Shown: positions 2-7,321, counted from the first letter of the stretch. The stretch: DNA of 7,829 nucleotides from Prasinococcaceae sp. CCMP 1430 (GCA_013416795.1 RQSC01000811.1:1-7829); one strand, 5' to 3'. The notes: generated by a model from the letters alone, not told the origin. A program made the numbers and translations.

Positions 2-595
2 CGACGAACCCGTCGCCGAATGAAGTGTCCTGAGCTCCCTGGCGGTCTTGCCTGTCACCGCCACATTGTTAATGTCATGCACCACAGGATAGAGCACACC
101 GCAGCCCTTGTGGTTGTCCGAGTACTCCTTGATGCACCCATTCAGCCTCTTGGTGGCCAGGCAGCTGCGGATGCGGGGGTGCTCTCCCAGGTTTGTGATG
201 CCCCCCTCCTTCGCATCCGCCCTCCTCAGGATGTCCTCGGCCAGGGAGCGGTCGGCATTGAGGTAGCGCTCCAACAGCACGGCCACCTTGTCACGGAACG
301 TGGCCGCGATCTTGCCGGGGAGCAGCATTATGATCTTGACCATCCCTTGTCGGTCGATCACGGGTGTGTCTCGCTGCCTGGCACCGGGGAATTTCCAGTT
401 GTCGGCCAGACCGACAACTTCGGGATGAGCTTTTTGCAGTGCCGCCCATGCATCTCGCGGGTTCTTAAATCCACAGCCTGACAGTGCATCATACAAGGAC
501 ATTCTTTCGTCGTCCGTCATGCGGATCTTGCCACCAAACTGTGGGTCCTCCTCCGCCCCGTCGGCCGGCGTCAGGTAGCGGATCACAGAGGACAT
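2..595 (-). CDS. Gene A: Bro-N-like (KFPG-QR-TPV) DNA-binding domain plus DinD-like C-terminal domain; 3'-partial, runs off the left edge; absent from the ORF track
   Basis: Manual translation from ATG at 595 gives 198 stop-free codons: MSSVIRYLTPADGAEEDPQFGGKIRMTDDERMSLYDALSGCGFKNPRDAWAALQKAHPEVVGLADNWKFPGARQRDTPVIDRQGMVKIIMLLPGKIAATFRDKVAVLLERYLNADRSLAEDILRRADAKEGGITNLGEHPRIRSCLATKRLNGCIKEYSDNHKGCGVLYPVVHDINNVAVTGKTARELRTLHSATGSS. It is collinear with B and D. The start sits in a perfect Kozak context (GCCACCATG). Confidence 0.92.
   Translation of the reverse strand, partial: MSSVIRYLTPADGAEEDPQFGGKIRMTDDERMSLYDALSGCGFKNPRDAWAALQKAHPEVVGLADNWKFPGARQRDTPVIDRQGMVKIIMLLPGKIAATFRDKVAVLLERYLNADRSLAEDILRRADAKEGGITNLGEHPRIRSCLATKRLNGCIKEYSDNHKGCGVLYPVVHDINNVAVTGKTARELRTLHSATGSS
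395..421 (-). repeat. Intragenic inverted repeat in gene A (perfect 9-bp arms, 5-nt loop)
   Basis: Sense strand reads AGTTGTCGG-TCTGG-CCGACAACT (arms 419-411 and 405-397), within codons EVVGLADNW. Confidence 0.9.
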
Positions 596-613
596 GGTGG
601 CAGATTCATACTG

Positions 614-627
614 TTATCATACATAAT
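614..627 (-). promoter_or_regulatory. Putative promoter motif ATTATGTATGATAA upstream of gene A
   Basis: Ends 18 nt before the ATG. It matches the motif upstream of gene E at 12/14 positions and shares the GATAACA core with the B/D upstream element. Confidence 0.5.
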
Positions 628-657
628 TGACGGTGTGTGGGCGCACCTGGCCAGTCT

Positions 658-663
658 TTTATT
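658..663 (-). terminator. AATAAA polyadenylation-type signal downstream of the 708..1646 gene
   Basis: The + strand reads TTTATT about 45 nt past the TGA, inside an AT-rich patch with the direct repeat ATTACAAAA x2. Confidence 0.45.
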
Positions 664-707
664 ACAAAATAAATTACAAAACTTTACTCCCACGACAGCA
701 TCCTCCT

Positions 708-1646
708 TCAATCCGTCATAAACTCCCCCGTCACCGTGCCGGGGTGCGCGGGGGTGAACCCGGGGGGCACGCCGTTGTCGATCAGCATGTAGTACGTCAT
801 GAACGCCTCCAACCACGCGAGCCGTTGTCTCCGTGCCGGGTCGGGGGACTTGTCGCTGCCTGCTTCGGCTCTCACCATGCGGATGCAGCTGTCCGCGGTG
901 GTGGCGCCCGCGTGGGCGTCCAGCACGCGCAACTGGCGAACGTACATCCTCCACTGGGGGGCGTAATCCGTCGCGACGATGGCGAGCGTCTCCGCGTCCG
1001 CCCCCTCCCCTCCCGCAATGTCCACCATGCTCGTGACCAGGTCCGTGGAGATCCTGTCCAGCCCCACCAGCAGCGACTCGTGGTCGCGCATGGCCTTCAC
1101 CACCTCCGGGTGCTGGTAGATGTACAGCGTCGAGTGGCGCTGGAACCCCAGCCTCCGAACCTGCCTGTCCAGCCTCCACAGGTCCCCGGGTGCGAAAGGG
1201 AACCGGGTCGCCGGGTCCTCGAACCGTCCGGACGCGATGATGTACTCCGCCAGCTTGACCGCGTCGAAACCCACCACCTGCCGCGTGGGGCGCACGAACT
1301 TGAACACGCGCTCACTAGAGGGCAGCGCGTCCATCGTGATGGGGTCCTCCTTGTTGGACACCCTCACGGCCAGGTAGGCGGCGATCGTCCTCTTGGCGCG
1401 GGCGTAGGGCAGCACCGTCCGCCTCACCCACCGCTGGACGCGGATGGCCTGCTGGTTGCAGTACGCCGCGCACTCCAGCTCCCGGTGCGTGGCGCTCCGG
1501 AACGGCCGCAGCCCCTGCATGAGCGCTATCTTTCTCAGCGTGTCACGCCTTGTGCCCTTGCCGTAGTAGTTGGCGGGGATGGCGGACGCCGCACGGACGC
1601 TGAGGCGGACGTCCTTGACGTCCACGGCCACGCGAAACGGCTTCAT
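708..1646 (-). CDS. Hypothetical giant-virus-type protein with HeH/SAP-like, IQ-like and U-box-like segments (putative ubiquitin-ligase-like)
   Basis: 312 aa from the first in-frame ATG (1646); the track starts at GTG 1694. Codons are strongly GC3-biased. Motifs: RRDTLRKIALMQGLRPFRSATHREL (HeH-like), AIRVQRWVRR (IQ-like) and DPITMDALP...FDAVKLAEYI...DPATRFPF (U-box-like, no zinc ligands). The start is uncertain. Confidence 0.8.
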   Translation of the reverse strand: MKPFRVAVDVKDVRLSVRAASAIPANYYGKGTRRDTLRKIALMQGLRPFRSATHRELECAAYCNQQAIRVQRWVRRTVLPYARAKRTIAAYLAVRVSNKEDPITMDALPSSERVFKFVRPTRQVVGFDAVKLAEYIIASGRFEDPATRFPFAPGDLWRLDRQVRRLGFQRHSTLYIYQHPEVVKAMRDHESLLVGLDRISTDLVTSMVDIAGGEGADAETLAIVATDYAPQWRMYVRQLRVLDAHAGATTADSCIRMVRAEAGSDKSPDPARRQRLAWLEAFMTYYMLIDNGVPPGFTPAHPGTVTGEFMTD

Positions 1647-1772
1647 TCCTACTGGTACGTCCACAGAATCCGGATGCGGATGTAGGCGGCACACCGCCGG
1701 TGGTGAGAAGTGCCTGCCCGGTTAACTTCATCAGACTTAAATATTATTATCAATATATAGCACCGAGATCTG

Positions 1773-1835
1773 AGATCCGAGCTGTTGACCGGGGCGGGGT
1801 CGCGCCAACGAACTCCCCGTCGACAGCTCAGATCT
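1773..1835 (-). terminator. Long inverted repeat overlapping the stop codon of gene E (possible 3'-end hairpin)
   Basis: Arms AGATCCGAGCTGTTGAC (1773-1789) and GTCGACAGCTCAGATCT (1819-1835) pair at 15/17 Watson-Crick positions, with inner GGGG/CCCC pairing. The stop codon is at 1828-1830. Confidence 0.6.
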
Positions 1836-2862
1836 TGAGTCTCTTCTGGCCGTACCTAGCGAACCTCTCTACGTTCAAGGGCCGGGTCAGTTCCAAGTCA
1901 GCCTTCATATCCTGTTTGTTCTTCTGTACCGCATCTATCGGAGCGGGGCCCTCAGGGGGCTTCACAAAGGCAGCCATGGCCTTCTGCACCTCCATCGCCG
2001 CCTTGTGCAGCTCCTTCTCCTCCCCCGGGTTCTTCGCGCGCTCCATCACATTGAACATGTAGAACCAGCTGTTCGCCAGCTGCCCGTCGTCCATCGGGTC
2101 TCTGGAGCTCCCGTGCTTCACGCCGTTGAGCTTCTTGAAAGCGGCCGCTGTCATCCCGGTCGCCGCCTCGCACGTCTTGTCGCCCAGAAACGCCATCACG
2201 GGTCCCACGCGCTCCTTGGGCAGATGGGAGGACACGAAGTCCGCCAGCTTGTGCTGAGTGTCCTTGGCCCTGATGCGGAGGGTCGGGTCGACCGTGCGCA
2301 CCGGTGGGACGTAGTCGGGGCGCGTGCGGCTGTTGCCCGGTTGGGTCAGCACCGCCACCGTGGTGGTCGTGCCGTGGACGGCGTCGTGGGCGTCGCGCAC
2401 CACCCGCATCATCGTGATGTCGCCGGCCAGGATGCGGTCCACCCACGAGCCTGCCTTGACGGCGAACTTGGAGCTTATCCACATGGCCAATTGGCTCACG
2501 AGACGGGGGTGGATCCAGATCCCGCGCTCGTCATTAGAGCCATCTGTAACCTCTTTAAAAACTGTTTTGGTGGTCGGCTCATTATTGAGCCCACCCCCGA
2601 CCTCCTGTTCTAACTCGTTGGCGAACTCTTGCACGCTCTCAAGCCTCCACCAGTTCTTGAAAAGTTTGCTACCATTTGAGGCTGCATGGCAAAGATCTTT
2701 CCCTAGAATGAGCTTGTCGCTTTTCCGTACTTTGATCTCCTTGGTCTCATCGACAACGAGACCGGGGAGGCTCTTGAGGGTGAATATCAAGTGCTTGTTG
2801 TTCTCTTTGACTAGCACAAAGAGTGGATGAGTAAAAAGGGCCGAGGCCTTGGCGAGAGCCAT
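1828..2862 (-). CDS. Gene E: KilA-N (APSES-like) DNA-binding domain plus DinD-like C-terminal domain
   Basis: KilA-N signatures: DLCHAASNGSKLFKNWWRLESVQEFANELE and GIWIHPRLVSQLAMWISSKFAVK. The C-terminal LRIRAKDTQHKL...EAATGMTAAAFKKLNGVKHGSSRDPM aligns with A, B and D. ATG 2862 (ACAACAATGG, strong Kozak) is preferred over 2910 and 2874 because the sequence between them is AT-rich and holds the promoter-like motif. Confidence 0.88.
   Translation of the reverse strand: MALAKASALFTHPLFVLVKENNKHLIFTLKSLPGLVVDETKEIKVRKSDKLILGKDLCHAASNGSKLFKNWWRLESVQEFANELEQEVGGGLNNEPTTKTVFKEVTDGSNDERGIWIHPRLVSQLAMWISSKFAVKAGSWVDRILAGDITMMRVVRDAHDAVHGTTTTVAVLTQPGNSRTRPDYVPPVRTVDPTLRIRAKDTQHKLADFVSSHLPKERVGPVMAFLGDKTCEAATGMTAAAFKKLNGVKHGSSRDPMDDGQLANSWFYMFNVMERAKNPGEEKELHKAAMEVQKAMAAFVKPPEGPAPIDAVQKNKQDMKADLELTRPLNVERFARYGQKRLKI
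2569..2598 (-). repeat. Intragenic imperfect palindrome in the KilA-N variable loop of gene E
   Basis: Sense strand GGGGGTGGGCTCA-ATAA-TGAGCCGACCACC pairs at 11/13 positions with a perfect inner 6 bp; it encodes part of EVGGGLNNEPTT. Confidence 0.7.
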
Positions 2863-2874
2863 TGTTGTTTGCAT

Positions 2875-2888
2875 TAATCTTACATAAT
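2875..2888 (-). promoter_or_regulatory. Putative promoter motif ATTATGTAAGATTA upstream of gene E
   Basis: 12/14 identical to the motif before gene A and ends 12 nt before ATG 2862. Confidence 0.45.
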
Positions 2889-2958
2889 ATGAAGACCATT
2901 TTAAACGCATCTGCCGATCAGTAAGAAGCGGTTAACAAATGGAGGTCTTAAAGCACCT

Positions 2959-3291
2959 ATGAGTGATGATGGCGGTCCGATAGTCGTGGAAAGGGCACCT
3001 GGTCTCACAGACTATCTGTACCCATGGGGCGAGAAATGCACCACCCTTTTTTCTGGGGACGCGTGCCCAATATTGGAGGAGGGCGACGACCAGTTCGATC
3101 TTGTGATGTCGTCCACCCACCGTCTCTGTTGCAATAGGGGTTGCGACAAAATCACCAGGAAGGGTGGCATGAAAAAGTGCGCAAAATGCAAAAAAGCATA
3201 TTACTGCTCGAAGGCATGCCAAACAGAGGCGTGGCCACTTCACAAGATTGGCTGTGCTCGTTTAAGAGACGGATGGTGCGAAACACAATAG
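2959..3291 (+). CDS. Small MYND-type zinc-finger protein
   Basis: CNRGC...KKCAKCKKAYYCSKACQTEAWPLHKIGC fits the MYND pattern C-C...CxxC...YCSxxCQxxxWxxHKxxC. 110 aa, ATG start. Confidence 0.9.
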   Translation: MSDDGGPIVVERAPGLTDYLYPWGEKCTTLFSGDACPILEEGDDQFDLVMSSTHRLCCNRGCDKITRKGGMKKCAKCKKAYYCSKACQTEAWPLHKIGCARLRDGWCETQ

Positions 3292-3306
3292 GCCCGGGGG
3301 CAGGTA

Positions 3307-3340
3307 GCGCGCTTATCTCAGGGGATAACATTTCTCCGCC
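3307..3340 (+). promoter_or_regulatory. Conserved 34-nt upstream element of gene B
   Basis: GCGCGCTTATCTCAGGGGATAACATTTCTCCGCC is 30/34 identical to 6353..6386 and contains the dyad TTATC-N6-GATAA. It ends 14 nt before the ATG. Confidence 0.75.
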
Positions 3341-3354
3341 ACTAGTAAACGGTC

Positions 3355-4266
3355 ATGACGTCCCAGGCACTTGTGAAGTATCTGCAGCCCTCGCGCGATG
3401 TGCCGGGGGATGACCCGTTCGCGAACAAGATGCGAGTGACGCCCGATGGCATGATTTCAAAGGTAGACGTCGTCAAGGTTGTGTGCTTTATGAACCCAGA
3501 TGGCACGTTGATGGACAATGCAGCTACTCAGGCATCAGGGGCGCTGGTGAGGCTTCACAAGGCATACCCAGAGGTTGAAGCATGCAGCTTTAACTTCAAA
3601 TTTCCCGGACCCGGGCAGCGAGACACTCCCGTCACCGACCGAGCTGGCATCATCAGGATCATCCAGCTGCTGCCCGGCAGGAGGGCCGCGTCGTTCCGCG
3701 ACAAGCTGGCGACGCTGTTCGAGCGGTACCTCGACGCCGACCGGTCGCTGGCCGACGAGATTTACGCGCGCGCGGATGCCAGGGAGTCTCAGCTGAAGGA
3801 CGACAAGCGCGTGAAGTGCTGCGAGTCCACAAAGGGCCACATGCAGGCGGTGAAGGAGAGCGGCGCCCCCTCTCTGGCGTCAAACCCGGGCAGGGTGTAC
3901 GCGCACATCAACGAGGTCCAGAACCACACGGCCACCGGGATGCACACCCGCGAGATCCGCGAGCTGCACCAGATGAAGAAGAGCGACTCGACGCGCGACT
4001 ACCTCACCGAGAGCGTCTGCGCCGGCATAGACCTTATGAACATCCTCAACAGGAACGCCATTTCCAGGGGCGAGGACCCCTCCGCCAGCATAGACACCAT
4101 AGGCGGCAAGCTGTTTTCGGTCTTTAAGGATCTCAAGATGCACCAGGAGGCCAGCGAGCCGCAGCCCCGGTCGTTCGCGCTGGCCAACAAGAGCAAGAGA
4201 GAGGAATACAACGCTCGACAGAAACTGGTAGTGGAGGCCCCGGCTAGGAAGCGCGTATGTTCGTAA
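3355..4266 (+). CDS. Gene B: Bro-N-like (KFPG-QR-TPV) DNA-binding domain plus DinD-like C-terminal domain
   Basis: 303-aa ORF with MRVTPDG...CFMNPDGT...FKFPGPGQRDTPVTDRAGIIRIIQLLPG...LFERYLDAD. It is paralogous to A, C and D at both protein and DNA level. Confidence 0.92.
   Translation: MTSQALVKYLQPSRDVPGDDPFANKMRVTPDGMISKVDVVKVVCFMNPDGTLMDNAATQASGALVRLHKAYPEVEACSFNFKFPGPGQRDTPVTDRAGIIRIIQLLPGRRAASFRDKLATLFERYLDADRSLADEIYARADARESQLKDDKRVKCCESTKGHMQAVKESGAPSLASNPGRVYAHINEVQNHTATGMHTREIRELHQMKKSDSTRDYLTESVCAGIDLMNILNRNAISRGEDPSASIDTIGGKLFSVFKDLKMHQEASEPQPRSFALANKSKREEYNARQKLVVEAPARKRVCS
3571..3597 (+). repeat. Intragenic inverted repeat in gene B (11-bp arms, 5-nt loop)
   Basis: GAGGTTGAAGC-ATGCA-GCTTTAACTTC forms 9 Watson-Crick plus 2 G-T pairs and encodes EVEACSFNF. 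Confidence 0.85.
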
Positions 4267-4268
4267 TC

Positions 4269-4274
4269 AATAAA
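4269..4274 (+). terminator. AATAAA polyadenylation-type signal after gene B
   Basis: Begins 2 nt after the TAA; a second AATAAA lies at 4322-4327. Confidence 0.5.
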
Positions 4275-4336
4275 GCATTTAAGGTTGTTTGTCCTTTTTT
4301 TATGTCATACTAGTACAAGTAAATAAAAAGGCCGAC

Positions 4337-4397
4337 CAGCCGGGGACGGCAGCGGTCACCGCGTGACAAGGCTACCGTCACCCGCGCGCCTCGGCTG
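4337..4397. other. GC-rich nested stem-loop in the intergenic gap between gene B and the 4409 gene
   Basis: Outer stem CAGCCGGGG (4337-4345) / CCTCGGCTG (4389-4397). Middle stem GACGGCAGC (4345-4353) / GCTACCGTC (4371-4379), 8/9 pairs. Inner stem GTCAC-cgc-GTGAC (4355-4367). Both flanks are AT-rich. Confidence 0.6.
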
Positions 4398-4408
4398 TGA
4401 TAATAAAT

Positions 4409-5029
4409 ATGGCCATCACCCTTAGCATGTCGCACCCCGTCGTGTCCATCGAGCGGCTTATGCCGTCAGAGACCGAATTCGGGACCGCGGAGGGTTTCTG
4501 GCTCAACCTGAGCGGCTCTCTTTACGACGATTTTGCGAAAGAGGGAATGCAAGGGTTTATTGACACAAAGGGCCGCTACTGCCTCGTTTTCAACGAATAC
4601 GATGACGACCCCGAAGACAATTTTATTAACCGCATTATCGACGCACTCTTCGATAAGAATGTGACATTTAGCGCGGAATCCTACCGTGGACCGATGTGCG
4701 CGAGTGGCGCGACTGCCATGAGCTGGAGGAGAGGGGATTCTTACATCGACATCCGGCGCCCGGAGGTGCGCGTGATACGAGCCAATTTGGAAAGGCCGTT
4801 CAAAGATCCAGAGTTCTACAAGTCCGTACCACCACCCGACCAACTGGAGATAGGTCAATACTCGTTCCCGTCCGCATACCGTCGCCTCATTCACGACTAC
4901 TGCAAGGACTTCACGGTCTACGAACTGATCGGAACCTACAACGGGGAGAACAAGAATCTGCCATCGTACGCGTCATGGAGTGAGCCGGTGCGGCTCGGGC
5001 GTGACATAAAAAATGACCGCCACCATTAA
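4409..5029 (+). CDS. Hypothetical protein (206 aa), no recognised family
   Basis: Long ORF with globular-looking composition, in tandem orientation with its neighbours and preceded by AT-rich TGATAATAAAT. ATG 4409 is preferred over the track's GTG 4397. Confidence 0.75.
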   Translation: MAITLSMSHPVVSIERLMPSETEFGTAEGFWLNLSGSLYDDFAKEGMQGFIDTKGRYCLVFNEYDDDPEDNFINRIIDALFDKNVTFSAESYRGPMCASGATAMSWRRGDSYIDIRRPEVRVIRANLERPFKDPEFYKSVPPPDQLEIGQYSFPSAYRRLIHDYCKDFTVYELIGTYNGENKNLPSYASWSEPVRLGRDIKNDRHH

Positions 5030-5032
5030 CAG

Positions 5033-5185
5033 ATGACGGCCGCCATGTTCATCCCCGTGCCCGCGCCGCGCCCCGTGCCGCTCCCCATTCCCCTGCCCGT
5101 CCCCGTGCCGGTGCCAGTGCCGCGACCGCGCCCGAGGCCCAGGCCCCGACAGCCGCGGCAGGCCAAGAAGAAGTTTGTGAAGTGA
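5033..5185 (+). CDS. 50-aa proline-rich basic microprotein with 16 consecutive X-Pro dipeptides; absent from the ORF track
   Basis: MTAAMFIPVPAPRPVPLPIPLPVPVPVPVPRPRPRPRPRQPRQAKKKFVK*. It fills the gap between the 5029 stop and the convergent DVNP stop almost exactly. Pro (CCC/CCG/CCA), Val and Arg codons vary synonymously while the dipeptide phase is kept. Confidence 0.7.
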   Translation: MTAAMFIPVPAPRPVPLPIPLPVPVPVPVPRPRPRPRPRQPRQAKKKFVK

Positions 5186-5195
5186 AAAGGCCGGG

Positions 5196-5498
5196 TTAAT
5201 TACGCGAGAAATTGGACATCACCTCGCGCCGGTTCTCGGGGGTATTCGCGAGGCCGTTTTCCTTTAACAAACGGTCCATCCGACTCTTGGCCTCCACCAT
5301 CGCCTCACTCAGCGATCCACCGGTCTCCGCGTGCACCTTCTGCACGAACTTGGCCCACGGGTTCTGCGCCCCTTTCTCGCTCCTCGCCTTCGAAACGACC
5401 CGGCCGTCCTTCCTCCGCACCAAGTCGTCGCTCGTGAGCCCTCCGCTCGTCCTGGTCGCCCTGCCCTTCATGACGTCAGCTTTGCTCCCGACCGGCAT
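5196..5498 (-). CDS. DVNP: DVNP (dinoflagellate/viral nucleoprotein) family basic DNA-binding protein
   Basis: VGSKADVMKGRATRTSGGLTSDDLVRRKDGRVVSKARS...PWAKFV matches the DVNP core as I know it (VGSR/KAxVxxGxAxKTSGGLxKxDLxxNKxGxxVSK...W). 100 aa, basic. Confidence 0.85.
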   Translation of the reverse strand: MPVGSKADVMKGRATRTSGGLTSDDLVRRKDGRVVSKARSEKGAQNPWAKFVQKVHAETGGSLSEAMVEAKSRMDRLLKENGLANTPENRREVMSNFSRN

Positions 5499-5542
5499 CC
5501 GTATCGCATATATGACTATACCAATATTTTAATCACCCCCCA

Positions 5543-5560
5543 ACACACACACACTCTCTC
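5543..5560 (+). repeat. Short (AC)6(TC)3 microsatellite in the 5' leader of gene C
   Basis: ACACACACACACTCTCTC read directly, 8 nt before ATG 5569. Confidence 0.6.
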
Positions 5561-5568
5561 CCGAGAAG

Positions 5569-6345
5569 ATGTCCGCAAACGTCCACGAAACGGACGCGTC
5601 CACGTCCGCAAACGTCCGCACGGTGTCAGCAGACGCGGACGCTGGGACGTCCGCAAACGCCCGCGTGACGCCGGATGGCAGAAATTCGATCATCGACGTC
5701 ATCAAGGTTGCATGCTTTATGAACCCGGATGGCACGTTTATGGACAAAGCAAGCGCTAAGGCGTCCAATTACTTGATTAGGCTTCAAGCCATGCATGCGG
5801 AAGTGACGCGTCCTATCAGCTATTGGAAGTTTCCCGGTCCAGGCCAGCGAGACACGCCGGTGATCGATTTTGAAGGCCTGAAGAAGATTGTGTACCTTCT
5901 GCCGTGTGTTACCCACGAGTCTGCTGACAAGATCAAGAACGCTAAGGATGTCGACGAACTTCTGCGCATTTTCTCCAGTTCATCCAATGCAAAGAAGCGA
6001 AAGAGGTGGGGAGAGAAGGACGTGCAGGCCGACCTCGCGGATAAGCTGGGGGGGCAGCGAGAGGTGAAGTGCCGGGCCGGGCTCATTGACATACTGTGCC
6101 CCGATACCAAGCAACTCATCGAGGTGAAGGAGTTCGGTGGCGCCCTGGCCGGCATCGGCCAGCTTCTGGGGTACGCCCTCGACTACCCGACCTACACGAA
6201 GAGGCTGCATCTATTTCGCACCCCGGCCTCGCTCAACGTGACCGCAGAGAGGCTGCTGATATTCAAGGAGGTCTGCGACTTGCACAAGATCGAGCTGACC
6301 CTGGACGAAGGCATAGAGTTGCAGGACCCCAACATTGACTTGTGA
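5569..6345 (+). CDS. Gene C: truncated Bro-N-like domain fused to a PD-(D/E)XK-family nuclease domain
   Basis: The N-part RVTPDG...CFMNPDGT...WKFPGPGQRDTPV...LLP matches B and D. The C-part EKDVQADL...GGQREVKCRAGLIDIL...IEVKE...IGQLLGY shows the E...D...ExK catalytic triad plus the QxxxY motif of RecB/Mrr-like nucleases. Confidence 0.88.
   Translation: MSANVHETDASTSANVRTVSADADAGTSANARVTPDGRNSIIDVIKVACFMNPDGTFMDKASAKASNYLIRLQAMHAEVTRPISYWKFPGPGQRDTPVIDFEGLKKIVYLLPCVTHESADKIKNAKDVDELLRIFSSSSNAKKRKRWGEKDVQADLADKLGGQREVKCRAGLIDILCPDTKQLIEVKEFGGALAGIGQLLGYALDYPTYTKRLHLFRTPASLNVTAERLLIFKEVCDLHKIELTLDEGIELQDPNIDL
5571..5659 (+). repeat. Three in-frame copies of GTCCGCAAACG with interspersed palindromes at the 5' end of gene C
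   Basis: Copies at 5571-5581, 5604-5614 and 5649-5659 (spacings 33 and 45 nt). Perfect palindrome GGACGCGTCC at 5592-5601. CGTCCGC (5613-5619) pairs with GCGGACG (5635-5641). Confidence 0.8.
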
Positions 6346-6352
6346 ACTGGTG

Positions 6353-6386
6353 GCGCGCTTATATCAAAGGATAACATTTCTCTGCC
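6353..6386 (+). promoter_or_regulatory. Conserved 34-nt upstream element of gene D
   Basis: GCGCGCTTATATCAAAGGATAACATTTCTCTGCC is 30/34 identical to 3307..3340 and ends 17 nt before the ATG. Confidence 0.75.
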
Positions 6387-6403
6387 TAATGATATAGCTC
6401 AAC

Positions 6404-7321
6404 ATGTCTCAGGTGCTGGTCAACTACCTGCGACCGGTGCACGCTGTGCCGGATGGTGAGCCAGATCCGATTGCTGGCAAGATCCGCGTGACGCCGGATG
6501 GTGATATTTCGAAGCTAGACATGATCAAAGTGATGTGCTTTATGAACGAGGACGGGACGTTCAAAGCCGGGGCGGGCGGAAACGCCTGGGTGTACTTGTC
6601 GAGGCTTGAAAAGGAGTACCCAGAGCTTACTACTCTGGGTCGCAACTTCAAATTCCCCGGTCCCGGTCAGCGAGAGACGCCTGTCACCGACCGGCAGGGC
6701 ATCATCAAGATCATCCAGCTCCTGCCCGGCAAGAAGGCCGCCGCCTTCCGCCACTCCATGGCCGTGCTGCTGGAGAAGTACCTCGACGCCGACCCGGCGC
6801 TCATCCAGGACCTGCACGACCGGTACCGCGAAAAGACCGGCGAGGAGTTCGTGCCTCTCCCTCGCCAGCAAGTGATTGGGGCCCCTCGCATCAAGAGCTG
6901 CGAGAAGACAAAGCTGGACATGCGCGCCATCAAGGAGAGCAGCGCCAAGCCCGTGCCGCCCAGGGTGTACGCCATCGTCAACAATATCTCTAACAAGCTG
7001 GCGACAGGATATGAGCAGACTGCGGAATACCGCAAAGACCAGGGGCTCGTAAAGAAAAGCCAGGCCACTCGCGACACGTTCACGGACGGGATGTGCGGTC
7101 TATCGATATTCTTCCACGAGCAGCACCTGGACATGGTGTCTAAGGGGGGAGACCCCGAGAAGTCGGCGCTGTCCTTAGTGGAGACACTGGCACCCGCGCT
7201 GGCAAAAACAGGGATATACGAGAAGGCGCGCGAGTACCGCGGACCTGAGTTTGCAACACACAACAAGCGATTGATGATGGAGAATCAGGCATGGAACAGG
7301 GACAAGAGAATCAAGGCGTAA
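6404..7321 (+). CDS. Gene D: Bro-N-like (KFPG-QR-TPV) DNA-binding domain plus DinD-like C-terminal domain
   Basis: 305-aa ORF collinear with B over its full length (FKFPGPGQRETPVTDRQGIIKIIQLLPG; RIKSCEKTK...VYAIVNNISNKLATG...TRD). Confidence 0.92.
   Translation: MSQVLVNYLRPVHAVPDGEPDPIAGKIRVTPDGDISKLDMIKVMCFMNEDGTFKAGAGGNAWVYLSRLEKEYPELTTLGRNFKFPGPGQRETPVTDRQGIIKIIQLLPGKKAAAFRHSMAVLLEKYLDADPALIQDLHDRYREKTGEEFVPLPRQQVIGAPRIKSCEKTKLDMRAIKESSAKPVPPRVYAIVNNISNKLATGYEQTAEYRKDQGLVKKSQATRDTFTDGMCGLSIFFHEQHLDMVSKGGDPEKSALSLVETLAPALAKTGIYEKAREYRGPEFATHNKRLMMENQAWNRDKRIKA
6618..6649 (+). repeat. Two overlapping inverted repeats in the variable segment of gene D
   Basis: Perfect ACCCAGAG-CTTACTA-CTCTGGGT (6618-6640), plus a degenerate 27-nt dyad GAGCTTACTAC-TCTGG-GTCGCAACTTC (6623-6649; 7 Watson-Crick and 1 G-T of 11 pairs) centred as in A and B. 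Confidence 0.75.

Follow-up and report, generated by a model that had tools for sequence, protein, structure and literature searches.

Why is a short, hypervariable stretch of a viral DNA-binding-protein gene kept as a DNA palindrome in hundreds of distant relatives, although the amino acids it encodes differ from paralog to paralog? We addressed this question in a window of 7,829 nucleotides (nt) from Prasinococcaceae sp. CCMP 1430 (GCA_013416795.1 RQSC01000811.1:1-7829; the window is the whole stretch of DNA that was analyzed). It contains four paralogous genes, A to D. According to the original prediction, the 9 codons preceding the K-F-P-G motif (here called the slot) form a dyad, that is, a potential hairpin, at a fixed position in each paralog, although decayed in C, and the two arms change together. 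Three explanations had been offered: (i) hairpin-driven coupled rewriting of the segment, (ii) an operator carried by each gene and matched to its own loop peptide, and (iii) an mRNA or single-stranded DNA hairpin acting as a signal.

The slot dyads in the window

We first reexamined the four slots, and all sequence statements of the original prediction were reproduced. The gene of paralog A (2-595, - strand) has a complete N-domain, as shown by its translation and by the N-domain alignment, but its C-terminal part is cut off by the start of the window. Slot A (395-421, - strand; E V V G L A D N W, encoded by GAA GTT GTC GGT CTG GCC GAC AAC TGG) has 9 consecutive Watson-Crick (WC) pairs (397-405 with 411-419) and a 5-nt loop, with a minimum free energy (MFE) of -14.8 kcal/mol. 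The Lys codon that follows in the gene (392-394) is AAA. Paralog B (3355-4266, + strand) consists of a predicted winged-helix-like N-domain and a C-domain with weak matches to phrog_2657, PDC-S13, and DdrC. Slot B (3571-3597, + strand; E V E A C S F N F) has 9 WC and 2 G·T pairs of 11 and a 5-nt loop (MFE -12.7 kcal/mol), and the next codon (3598-3600) is AAA. An 81%-identical relative has 10 WC pairs and 1 G·T pair at the same place. The E-V and N-F codons (GAAGTT and AACTTC) are themselves reverse complements.

In the other two paralogs, the dyad is lost or weak. Paralog C (5569-6345, + strand) has the N-domain fused to a different C-terminal part, which had been called a nuclease; searches of PDB, PHROG, NCBIfam, and PADLOC gave no match and thus no support for this. 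In slot C (5800-5826, + strand; E V T R P I S Y W), only 3 WC pairs of 11 are present, and only the 8-nt palindrome GACGCGTC (5805-5812) remains. Paralog D (6404-7321, + strand) has the same architecture as B. Slot D (6623-6649, + strand; E L T T L G R N F) has 7 WC pairs and 1 G·T pair of 11 (MFE -2.1 kcal/mol), and its next codon (6650-6652) is AAA. Its inner pairs are close to chance and its 7 WC pairs are near the mean of codon-resampled sequences (see below), so the view that D retains the dyad is generous. A separate perfect 8-bp hairpin with a 7-nt loop (6618-6640, + strand) overlaps the left half of slot D, and its center lies 7 nt upstream of the canonical center. Since a perfect stem of ≥8 bp occurs in about 1.4% of random 45-nt windows, this could be either a relocated hairpin or chance.

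To estimate how often such dyads arise by chance, we scanned the nine ORFs of the window. Only 4 of 6306 27-nt windows reached 9 WC pairs, and two of them were slots A and B. This is only suggestive, because the conserved E-V/N-F codons give 4-6 pairs for free.

The dyad in relatives

Next, we tested whether the dyad is present in homologs, which were found through the downstream protein motif and not through the dyad. In these relatives (phage contigs, cyanobacterial genomes, and giant-virus-like contigs), the same slot is an 11-12 bp stem with a 3-5 nt loop, the arms of which differ but stay complementary. The mean was 8.06 of 11 WC pairs, against 5.65±0.17 after synonymous-codon resampling, and the mean of the inner five pairs was 3.58, against 1.61±0.15 after swapping arms between homologs. 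At least 9 WC pairs were reached by 54% of the slots, but only by 0.02% of 37,992 other windows of the same ORFs. In one alignment, 80% of the cells were paired, against 29-45% when the partner was slid, and the covariation score was 0.497 against 0.184, which was reached by 0 of 500 shuffles. The sequences are not phylogenetically independent, and the p-values given here and below are therefore optimistic. RNAalifold predicted this helix and no other in a 117-nt alignment. A covariance model with the helix scored held-out slots 14-22 bits above a sequence-only model; the scores were 40.5 against 20.6 bits for slot A and 45.4 against 31.1 bits for slot B. Thus, the observation of a position-fixed dyad with covarying arms is confirmed, and it holds across the family. 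An excess over codon-shuffled controls and arm covariation, which had been set beforehand as the tests of the idea, were both clearly found.

The dyad is also visible at the protein level. In 157 slot peptides from 133 representative proteins, residues 3 and 7 were compatible with antisense codons in 76% of cases against 22±3% in shuffles, and residues 4 and 6 in 60% against 26±3%. The palindrome is in phase with the reading frame: codon i is the reverse complement of codon 10-i, and codon 5 is the center. The family has about 2,600 protein clusters at E≤0.001, and the feature was seen in every group sampled, including a phage contig with DNA polymerase, primase, an SSB-like protein, exonuclease, and endolysin. 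In multidomain proteins, it is repeated once per domain: the five best dyads of a gene with five domain repeats are its five slots, each with different arms. When three residues are inserted before the wing motif, the dyad follows the E-V...N-L codons. Across 492 kb of loci, family slots were about 35-40 of the 67 strong dyads found, whereas a block-shuffled control gave 4. Dyads of 8-10 WC pairs persist in degraded copies. On the other hand, about 20% of members with intact ORFs, including C and D, have lost the dyad, and only one of them has a relocated dyad, so the feature is dispensable.

Codon constraint and evolution of the arms

We then analyzed codon usage in and around the slot. Position 8 was NAC 52 times and NAT never, position 9 was TTC 38 times and TTT once, and Val was GTT 32 of 53 times. 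The Lys codon just 3' of the stem was AAA 21:3 in GC-rich loci, although AAA is 28% elsewhere in the same ORFs (p=1.5e-9) and 44% for Lys followed by Phe in general. Copying of one arm from the other cannot produce this bias.

Inner-arm identity tracked the third-codon-position identity of the flanks (0.48 against 0.45, 0.57 against 0.60, and 0.81 against 0.84), showing that the arms diverge at the pace of synonymous sites. Two relatives with flanks only 64-68% identical share all 24 stem bases, and their triloop is exactly inverted, so that one slot is the exact reverse complement of the other. Compensated pairs were found between close relatives. These comparisons between relatives, made without ancestral-state inference of single events, agree with arm homogenization and spacer inversion by template switching, which is reported to homogenize inverted-repeat arms, invert spacers, and maintain stems (PMC8604942, PMC8794818, PMC5941160).

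Similarity to described families

To identify the encoded domain, we compared it with described families. The term Bro-N-like, used in the original prediction, is loose: none of 8 relatives had a precomputed Pfam domain such as Bro-N (PF02498), and the N-domains gave no PHROG or NCBIfam Bro-N hit. An AlphaFold model (pLDDT 87.8) shows a predicted winged-helix-like domain. Its top matches in BFVD are uncharacterized phaeovirus proteins (Feldmannia sp. virus, FirrV-1, and EsV-1), namely, B5LWF9 (E 1.9e-6, TM 0.77), B5LWM3, Q6XM33, and Q8QN79; this is a match of protein structure only. Phage "Bro-N domain-containing" and antirepressor proteins appear only weakly, at E 0.01-0.1 with TM about 0.45-0.5. 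The best PDB fold match is DdrC, but it is weak (E 0.24, TM 0.48-0.53), and the scores against NCBIfam NF033622 were 21.7 bits for B and 16 bits for A, below the curated cut-off of 150 bits. The PADLOC candidate defense model PDC-S13 was matched by B (1.4e-7), D (2e-6), and a phage gene of a relative, locus L055 (1e-5), with matches covering the wing and the C-domain only. Neither strand of the window matched any Rfam 15 family up to E=1.

The suggestion in the original prediction that KilA-N genes behave alike is supported for one phage KilA-N subfamily, in which a covarying 22-24 nt palindrome lies at a fixed distance from the conserved strand motif. The two families are not demonstrably homologous (hhalign probability 0.25%), and that the palindromes occupy the same structural place is our reading of the motif order only. 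The KilA-N gene of the window itself is a different ORF (1828-2910, - strand).

Discussion

The three explanations offered in the original prediction are partly supported. A hairpin acting as a signal (iii) fits best, since all 11-12 positions pair about equally often, the loop sequence is free, and the helix is the only conserved structure. Hairpin-driven rewriting (i) is supported only in a weak form: the pace of arm drift and the single loop inversion fit template-switch copying, but nothing shows hypermutation or directed diversification. A matched operator (ii) is not supported.

Our analysis establishes that the conserved entity in this segment is a nucleic acid palindrome and not a peptide. 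Residues 3, 4, 6, and 7 of the slot are passengers of the arm sequence, while residue 8 is held to N/D/H/Y (NAC) and the Phe codon at position 9 to TTC by pairing with the E-V codons. What follows is inferred, including function, folding, and any binding. We tentatively propose that the palindrome is a selected stem-loop acting in cis, more likely at the DNA than at the mRNA level. It would be a small hairpin or cruciform recognized by shape, together with the conserved base of the stem and the A-rich 3' flank. The only factor that travels with it through bacteria, phages, and algal viruses is the DNA-binding domain encoded around it, and we therefore take that domain family to be the most likely reader of the putative site, an inference from co-inheritance alone, with indirect support from the one dyad per domain and its persistence in degraded copies. 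This would resemble other replication, packaging, or control sites that lie inside the gene of the protein that uses them. In view of this host range, no host-specific RNA machinery can be the reader. Pairing would be kept up largely by template-switch-type copying of one arm from the other, with selection removing broken versions, which would explain how the arms drift at the neutral pace yet stay complementary. We consider a selected structure of some kind slightly more likely than not, whereas a DNA-level site read by the family itself is possible but doubtful. The free, invertible loop fits a mere mutational attractor as well as it fits a shape-read site, and a 27-bp palindrome is short for cruciform extrusion in duplex DNA. 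The excess of G·T over A·C is weak (30 against 16, p=0.054, in the main family; 11 against 7 in KilA-N) and does not decide the strand or the molecule.

The main rival, itself doubtful but possible, is a neutral, self-perpetuating palindrome. In this view, a short inverted repeat arose once in a linker that tolerates almost any residues, and intramolecular template switching has since corrected every mismatch, so that the amino acids merely follow. Divergence of the arms at the synonymous-site pace is what 50:50 revert-or-copy predicts and is faster than classical compensatory evolution. The spacer inversion with identical arms, the persistence in degraded copies, the presence in phages, bacteria, and eukaryotic viruses without any shared trans factor, and the loss from about 20% of intact genes also fit, and there is published support for preferential correction of imperfect repeats to perfect ones and for multinucleotide changes in coding DNA (PMC5941160, PMC8604942, PMC8794818). 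However, arm copying cannot explain the AAA bias 3 nt outside the stem. Neutrality also does not explain why the palindrome sits at this one site and nowhere else in the same genes, where other variable, indel-rich loops of the domain are not palindromic, nor why a second family has a palindrome at a fixed site. Moreover, retention in about 75-80% of members of a family with saturated synonymous sites needs a very high ratio of correction to mutation.

An mRNA stem-loop that modulates translation (a pause before the wing is made), mRNA stability, or binding of the protein to its own message is unlikely. It is suggested by the G·T over A·C difference on the sense strand (46 against 17 when the E/F pair is included), by A-rich triloops being more frequent than T-rich ones on that strand (AAA + AAT 16 against TTT + ATT 6), by the A-rich 3' flank, and by the RNAalifold helix. 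But the G·T bias is marginal and partly reflects codon constraints, and the element would have to work with both bacterial and eukaryotic expression machinery. The loop can be inverted without loss of the arms, dyads persist in copies that can no longer be translated, and no Rfam family matches.

Very unlikely is a duplex-DNA operator coevolving with the specificity of each paralog, in which a dimeric protein would bind the two-fold symmetric site in its own gene. Paralogs and domain repeats within one genome all have different arms, and in two nearly identical repeats of one gene the slot and the end of the preceding helix are much more diverged than the flanks. In the model, the slot lies between the long helix and the wing, plausibly near DNA, and the conserved outer half-sites are 21 bp apart center to center. 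However, all 11-12 positions of each arm are symmetric to about the same degree (64-88%), which protein contacts would not demand. Drift at the neutral pace would require hundreds of matched specificity changes, no code lets a peptide recognize its own codons, and arms can be identical between proteins whose flanks are only 64-68% identical. Finally, a small mobile palindromic element inserted in frame, as found inside genes of some bacteria and organelles, is effectively refuted by the constant slot length (9 codons in 129 of about 145 domains, palindromic or not), by the lack of a gap in members without the dyad, and by outer arms that are the domain's own E-V and N-F codons, although another part of one relative's gene holds two perfect 11-bp-arm palindromes with identical outer arms, 57 nt apart and out of phase with the reading frame.

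How does the element compare with described systems? Inverted repeats kept perfect by template switching (Lavi et al. 2018, PMC5941160; Abraham & Hazkani-Covo 2021, PMC8604942; Mönttinen & Löytynoja 2022, PMC8794818) share with it the location inside coding DNA, arm homogenization, spacer inversion, joint replacement of neighboring amino acids, and pairing that is kept while the sequence drifts. Those cases are scattered, lineage-specific events or RNA genes, whereas here one site of one domain is palindromic in most members of a large family across phages, bacteria, and giant-virus-like elements, with a flank constraint outside the repeat. Perfect inverted repeats in translated genes (2019, PMC6649704) are likewise a compromise between protein sequence and a stringent secondary structure, but they are long (up to 284 bp), numerous per genome, located in conserved protein regions, and lineage-specific. 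Here, a single 24-27 nt element per domain lies in a variable linker and is conserved by position across very distant hosts.

Replication origins within initiator genes of lambdoid phages, small isometric ssDNA phages, and rolling-circle plasmids are cis sites encoded and inherited as one unit with the protein acting on them, as we infer here; those sites have a conserved sequence and demonstrated binding or cleavage, whereas here only the shape, the base of the stem, and the flank are conserved. Integron attC sites, ends of IS200/IS605 elements, and hairpin promoters of N4-like phages are defined by a folded strand with arms that covary between copies. They are noncoding, associated with a known recombinase, transposase, or polymerase, and have characteristic bulges or loop bases; none of these features was seen here. 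The hairpin rule for transcript 3' ends in giant viruses (Priet et al. 2015, PMC4402537) also involves sequence-free palindromic hairpins, but these lie after the stop codon in AT-rich spacers and are cut by a viral enzyme. The present hairpin is translated, lies in frame in the middle of a domain, and also occurs in phages and cyanobacteria.

More speculatively, and unlikely on present evidence, each DNA-binding module of this kind (this family, at least one KilA-N subfamily, and possibly more of the Bro-N/KilA-N/Rha-type modules) may carry its own cognate, shape-read hairpin site of about 24-27 nt inside its coding sequence. Module and site would then form one heritable, shuffleable unit in phages, bacteria, and giant viruses, and the free drift of the site by arm copying would write the hypervariable loop of the protein.

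Structured nucleic acid elements with clear covariation are rare inside protein-coding sequence and are normally tied to a known process. This one is embedded in phase in a widespread viral and bacterial DNA-binding domain and is conserved across phages, cyanobacteria, and algal giant-virus-like elements. It shows that an apparently hypervariable, "positively selected" protein loop can be a passenger of DNA or RNA structure, which is a caution for scans for diversifying selection and for specificity-loop predictions. If the palindrome is neutral, it is probably the clearest natural example of a palindrome surviving deep evolutionary time by template switching alone. If the hairpin is a functional site, it defines a new cis element for a very large and poorly understood group of phage, prophage, and giant-virus regulators, some of which resemble candidate defense genes.

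Gene content of the window and predicted structure of the N-terminal domain

The window contains four paralogs sharing an N-terminal domain of about 110 residues with the invariant motif K-F-P-G-x-G-Q-R-x-T-P-V. Paralog A (2-595, - strand) is cut by the window edge; the others are B (3355-4266), C (5569-6345), and D (6404-7321). The other genes include a KilA-N gene (1828-2910, - strand). The nearest proteins are two from the green alga Mesostigma viride (77% and 59% identity) and one from a public read assembly (81%). An exact look-up of protein B in public assemblies returned nothing, and sequence searches of the PDB with B and C were also negative.

An AlphaFold model of the B N-domain (pLDDT 87.8) is winged-helix-like, with helices at 16-25 and 36-50, a short turn, strands at 59-62 and 70-74 (the K-F-P-G...T-P-V "wing"), and then two helices. 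The best structural matches of this model are uncharacterized proteins of brown-algal phaeoviruses (TM up to 0.77), whereas phage Bro-N/antirepressor proteins and bacterial DdrC match only weakly. The window is therefore, on present evidence, probably part of a phaeovirus-like element in or near an algal genome. The label "Bro-N-like" used in the original prediction is at best a superfamily-level label.

Some further features of the window were noted. Paralogs B and D share a conserved segment of about 35 nt directly upstream of their start codons (3307-3340 and 6353-6387), which is not shared with A or C and may be a duplicated promoter or leader. A hexamer array at 5054-5121 encodes a Pro/Val/Arg-rich 50-residue ORF (5033-5185), and direct 10-nt repeats and inverted repeats lie in the first 90 nt of paralog C (5591-5659), giving its repetitive N terminus. 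A small Cys-rich ORF (2959-3291, + strand) looks like a MYND-type zinc finger by eye, but no library match supported this.

The slot palindrome is a family-wide feature

Each paralog has a 9-codon slot preceding K-F-P-G, in which a position-fixed dyad had been predicted. The observation held, and every statement made on the sequence was correct. Slot A (395-421, - strand) has 9 perfect pairs, slot B (3571-3597) has 9 WC and 2 G·T pairs of 11, slot D (6623-6649) has 7 WC and 1 G·T pairs with a separate perfect 8-bp hairpin at 6618-6640, and slot C (5800-5826) is decayed. Only 4 of 6306 27-nt windows in the nine ORFs reach 9 WC pairs, and two of these are slots A and B. This was only suggestive, because the conserved E-V and N-F codons are reverse complements and give up to six pairs for free.

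To test whether the dyad is a property of the family, we collected homologous DNA through the protein motif downstream of the slot, so that the sampling was blind to the dyad. The sources were 7 viral contigs, 44 metagenome contigs, further viral contigs found with a degenerate DNA pattern, 4 bacterial genome contigs, and 4 contigs for chosen proteins; loci of this collection are designated by L numbers. In the first 50 unique slots, the mean was 8.06 of 11 WC pairs, against 5.65±0.17 after synonymous-codon resampling. The inner five pairs scored 3.58, against 1.61±0.15 after swapping arms between homologs. At least 9 WC pairs were found in 54% of the slots but in only 0.02% of 37,992 other windows in the same ORFs.

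In the alignment, 80% of cells are paired, against 29-45% when the partner is slid. Six of the twelve pairs show many two-sided changes; one example column pair reads GC 16, CG 13, AU 7, UA 6. None of 500 shuffles reached the observed covariation. RNAalifold found this helix and no further conserved helix in 117 nt, and a covariance model with the helix beat a sequence-only model by 14-22 bits on slots that were not in its training set.

Next, we tested whether the constraint is visible at the protein level. A profile search of 1.84 billion representative proteins found 2,596 clusters at E≤0.001. In 157 slot peptides from 133 of the best 150 hits plus the 8 relatives found earlier, residues 3/7 can be encoded by reverse-complementary codons in 76% of cases (22±3% in shuffles) and residues 4/6 in 60% (26±3%).

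Anatomy of the palindrome and codon constraint

The palindrome is in phase with the reading frame: codon i pairs with codon 10-i, and codon 5 is the center. In about half of the slots a twelfth pair leaves a triloop, which is A/T-only in AT-rich genomes. The slot is 9 codons long in 129 of about 145 domains. When three residues are inserted before the wing motif, the dyad stays with the E-V...N-L codons.

Synonymous choice is strongly constrained inside the stem. Position 8 is NAC 52 times and NAT never, Phe at position 9 is TTC 38:1, and Val is GTT 32 of 53 times. The Lys codon just 3' of the stem is also biased: in GC-rich loci it is AAA 21:3, where AAA accounts for 28% of Lys codons elsewhere in the same ORFs. 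A general codon-pair effect was ruled out, since Lys followed by Phe uses AAA 44% of the time in GC-rich loci, against 88% at the site. Further away, codon use is mostly at background, though Arg codons at slot positions -7, 14, and 17 also deviate.

A gene with five domain repeats (locus L088) has five different 10-12 bp hairpins, and they are the five best dyads in that gene. They include both halves of a local tandem duplication of 22 codons (slot plus first wing strand; L088:7258-7350) inside one domain repeat, where both copies keep a dyad with different arms. In addition, a 10-of-11 dyad with slot-like outer arms (L088:7908-7934) overlaps the stop codon of this gene in another frame; it could be the remnant of a sixth slot or a 3'-end hairpin. 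In a four-repeat gene (locus L091), two perfect 11-bp-arm palindromes lie 57 nt apart (L091:4479-4505 and L091:4536-4562) in another part of the gene. They share identical outer arms but have different inner arms and are out of phase with the reading frame, showing the design of the slot in a different domain.

Host range and genomic context

The family and its hairpin occur in a phage contig with DNA polymerase, primase-helicase, an SSB-like protein, exonuclease, and endolysin, in filamentous cyanobacterial genomes, and in giant-virus-like contexts. A tblastn search of the N-domain and of a phage-type relative against 50,697 GenBank phage records detected no relative. The wing and C-domain of B (3355-4266), of D (6404-7321), and of the phage homolog (L055:10259-11014) weakly match the PADLOC candidate defense protein PDC-S13 (E 1e-7 to 1e-5).

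Evolution of the arms

Identity of the inner arms between homologs tracks identity at third codon positions of the flanks: 0.48/0.45, 0.57/0.60, and 0.81/0.84 in the three informative bins. The arms therefore drift at roughly the neutral pace while staying paired. Close relatives show compensated pairs that change even the "conserved" V and N. Two nearly identical domain repeats of the L091 gene (L091:4102-4128 and L091:5002-5028) are about 98% identical for 150 nt downstream of the slot but differ at 8 of 27 slot positions, including two fully compensated pairs, and at many positions in the 30 nt upstream. This suggests gene conversion that stops at the slot, or faster change there.

Two slots of different loci, L011:2109-2135 and L094:3112-3138, are exact reverse complements of each other. 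All 24 stem bases are identical and the triloop is exactly inverted, changing Lys to Phe, although the flanks are only 64-68% identical. These patterns are what template switching between the arms produces (PMC8604942, PMC8794818, PMC5941160).

Loss and persistence of the dyad

About a fifth of members with intact ORFs lack the dyad, C and D among them. We looked for replacement hairpins in these members and found a relocated one only in locus L049 and perhaps in paralog D; the rest match the background. In L049, a perfect 11-bp dyad (L049:2006-2032) lies 16 nt upstream of the decayed slot (L049:2022-2048), and its right arm is the left arm of the old slot, as if the arm had been copied to the other side. 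Conversely, several degraded copies, whose breaks were counted but not located, keep a dyad of 8-10 WC pairs. These are a copy on the - strand of L031/L039 with one frameshift, L051 with one frameshift, a truncated copy on the - strand of L043, and a second copy in L047 with several stops and no recognizable flanks.

To look for a strand preference, mismatches were compared. On the sense strand, G·T outnumbers A·C by 30 to 16 outside the E/F pair (p=0.054), and transversion mismatches number 66. This is weak evidence for a sense-strand fold and does not separate RNA from DNA.

A covarying palindrome in phage KilA-N genes

The original prediction had also suggested that phage KilA-N genes carry such palindromes, which prompted a test. 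We used relatives of the window's KilA-N ORF from GenBank phages plus 80 viral contigs found through the G-T-W-[VIL]-H-P motif (loci L096-L099 and L103-L182); no close relatives of the window's KilA-N gene were found in viral contigs. In phages L097 and L098, the KilA-N gene sits directly downstream of cI, and there are E. coli prophages whose KilA-N gene lies next to cI. At a fixed distance from the motif, over the codons for x-x-G-I-P-x-x, 30 of 44 unique sequences have ≥10 of 12 WC pairs, forming a 22-24 nt palindrome (for example, L096:419-442 and L099:430-451). The center is conserved and the outer arms vary.

The mean was 8.8 of 12 pairs, against 6.53±0.16 after synonymous resampling, and pairs 5-12 scored 5.86, against 3.60±0.22 after arm swapping. 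In the 32 sequences whose palindrome sits at the standard offset, 92% of cells pair, eight of twelve pairs show two-sided changes, and none of 500 shuffles reached the covariation. The sample is limited to sequences ≥51% identical to one E. coli phage protein, and more distant KilA-N genes, including the one in the window, lack the palindrome. A profile comparison revealed no detectable homology between the two families. That both palindromes lie between a helix and the conserved beta-hairpin is our reading of the motif order only. The suggestion on KilA-N genes was supported for one phage KilA-N subfamily.

Interpretation

The analysis itself establishes a family-wide, in-phase, covarying palindrome, whereas any function of it, and the factor that would read it, are inferred from sequence alone. 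Two readings remain. In the first, the palindrome is a selected stem-loop whose pairing is kept up by arm copying. This is supported by the AAA constraint outside the repeat, the restriction to one site of the gene, the presence of one hairpin per domain, and the parallel in a second family. In the second, a neutral palindrome perpetuates itself by template switching, in line with the neutral pace of arm change, the loop inversion, the dispensability in a fifth of members, and the persistence in degraded copies. We commit to the first reading, considering selection of some kind slightly more likely than not. Within it, a role at the mRNA level is an alternative that we consider unlikely.

Of the interpretations offered with the original prediction, only a part was supported: an mRNA or ssDNA hairpin acting as a signal fits best, and hairpin-driven coupled rewriting is supported only in a weak form, in that the arm changes fit template switching, but a duplex operator co-evolving with each paralog is unlikely, because all 11-12 positions of each arm are about equally symmetric and the arms drift neutrally. 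Chance, amino acid composition, or a by-product of the conserved E-V/N-F codons (synonymous resampling, arm swapping, background of other windows), a protein-level cause such as complementary hydropathy or a beta-hairpin (constrained synonymous positions; the slot is a helix-to-strand linker in the model, not a hairpin), an inserted mobile palindrome (constant slot length), and a giant-virus transcript-end hairpin (position and host range) are all excluded.

The nearest known phenomena are template-switch-maintained inverted repeats, the coding palindromes of Nematomorpha mitochondria, cis sites embedded in the genes of their own binding proteins, and sequence-free ssDNA hairpin sites. We found no description of the present element in the papers searched and no match in Rfam. 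None of these phenomena combines a position-fixed, in-phase, covarying hairpin with a widespread DNA-binding domain.

Within the reading of a selected stem-loop, we tentatively favor, as one possibility, a DNA-level, shape-read cis site that would be used by the domain family itself. That protein is the only factor inherited together with the site across bacteria, phages, and algal viruses, and degraded copies could still serve intact paralogs.
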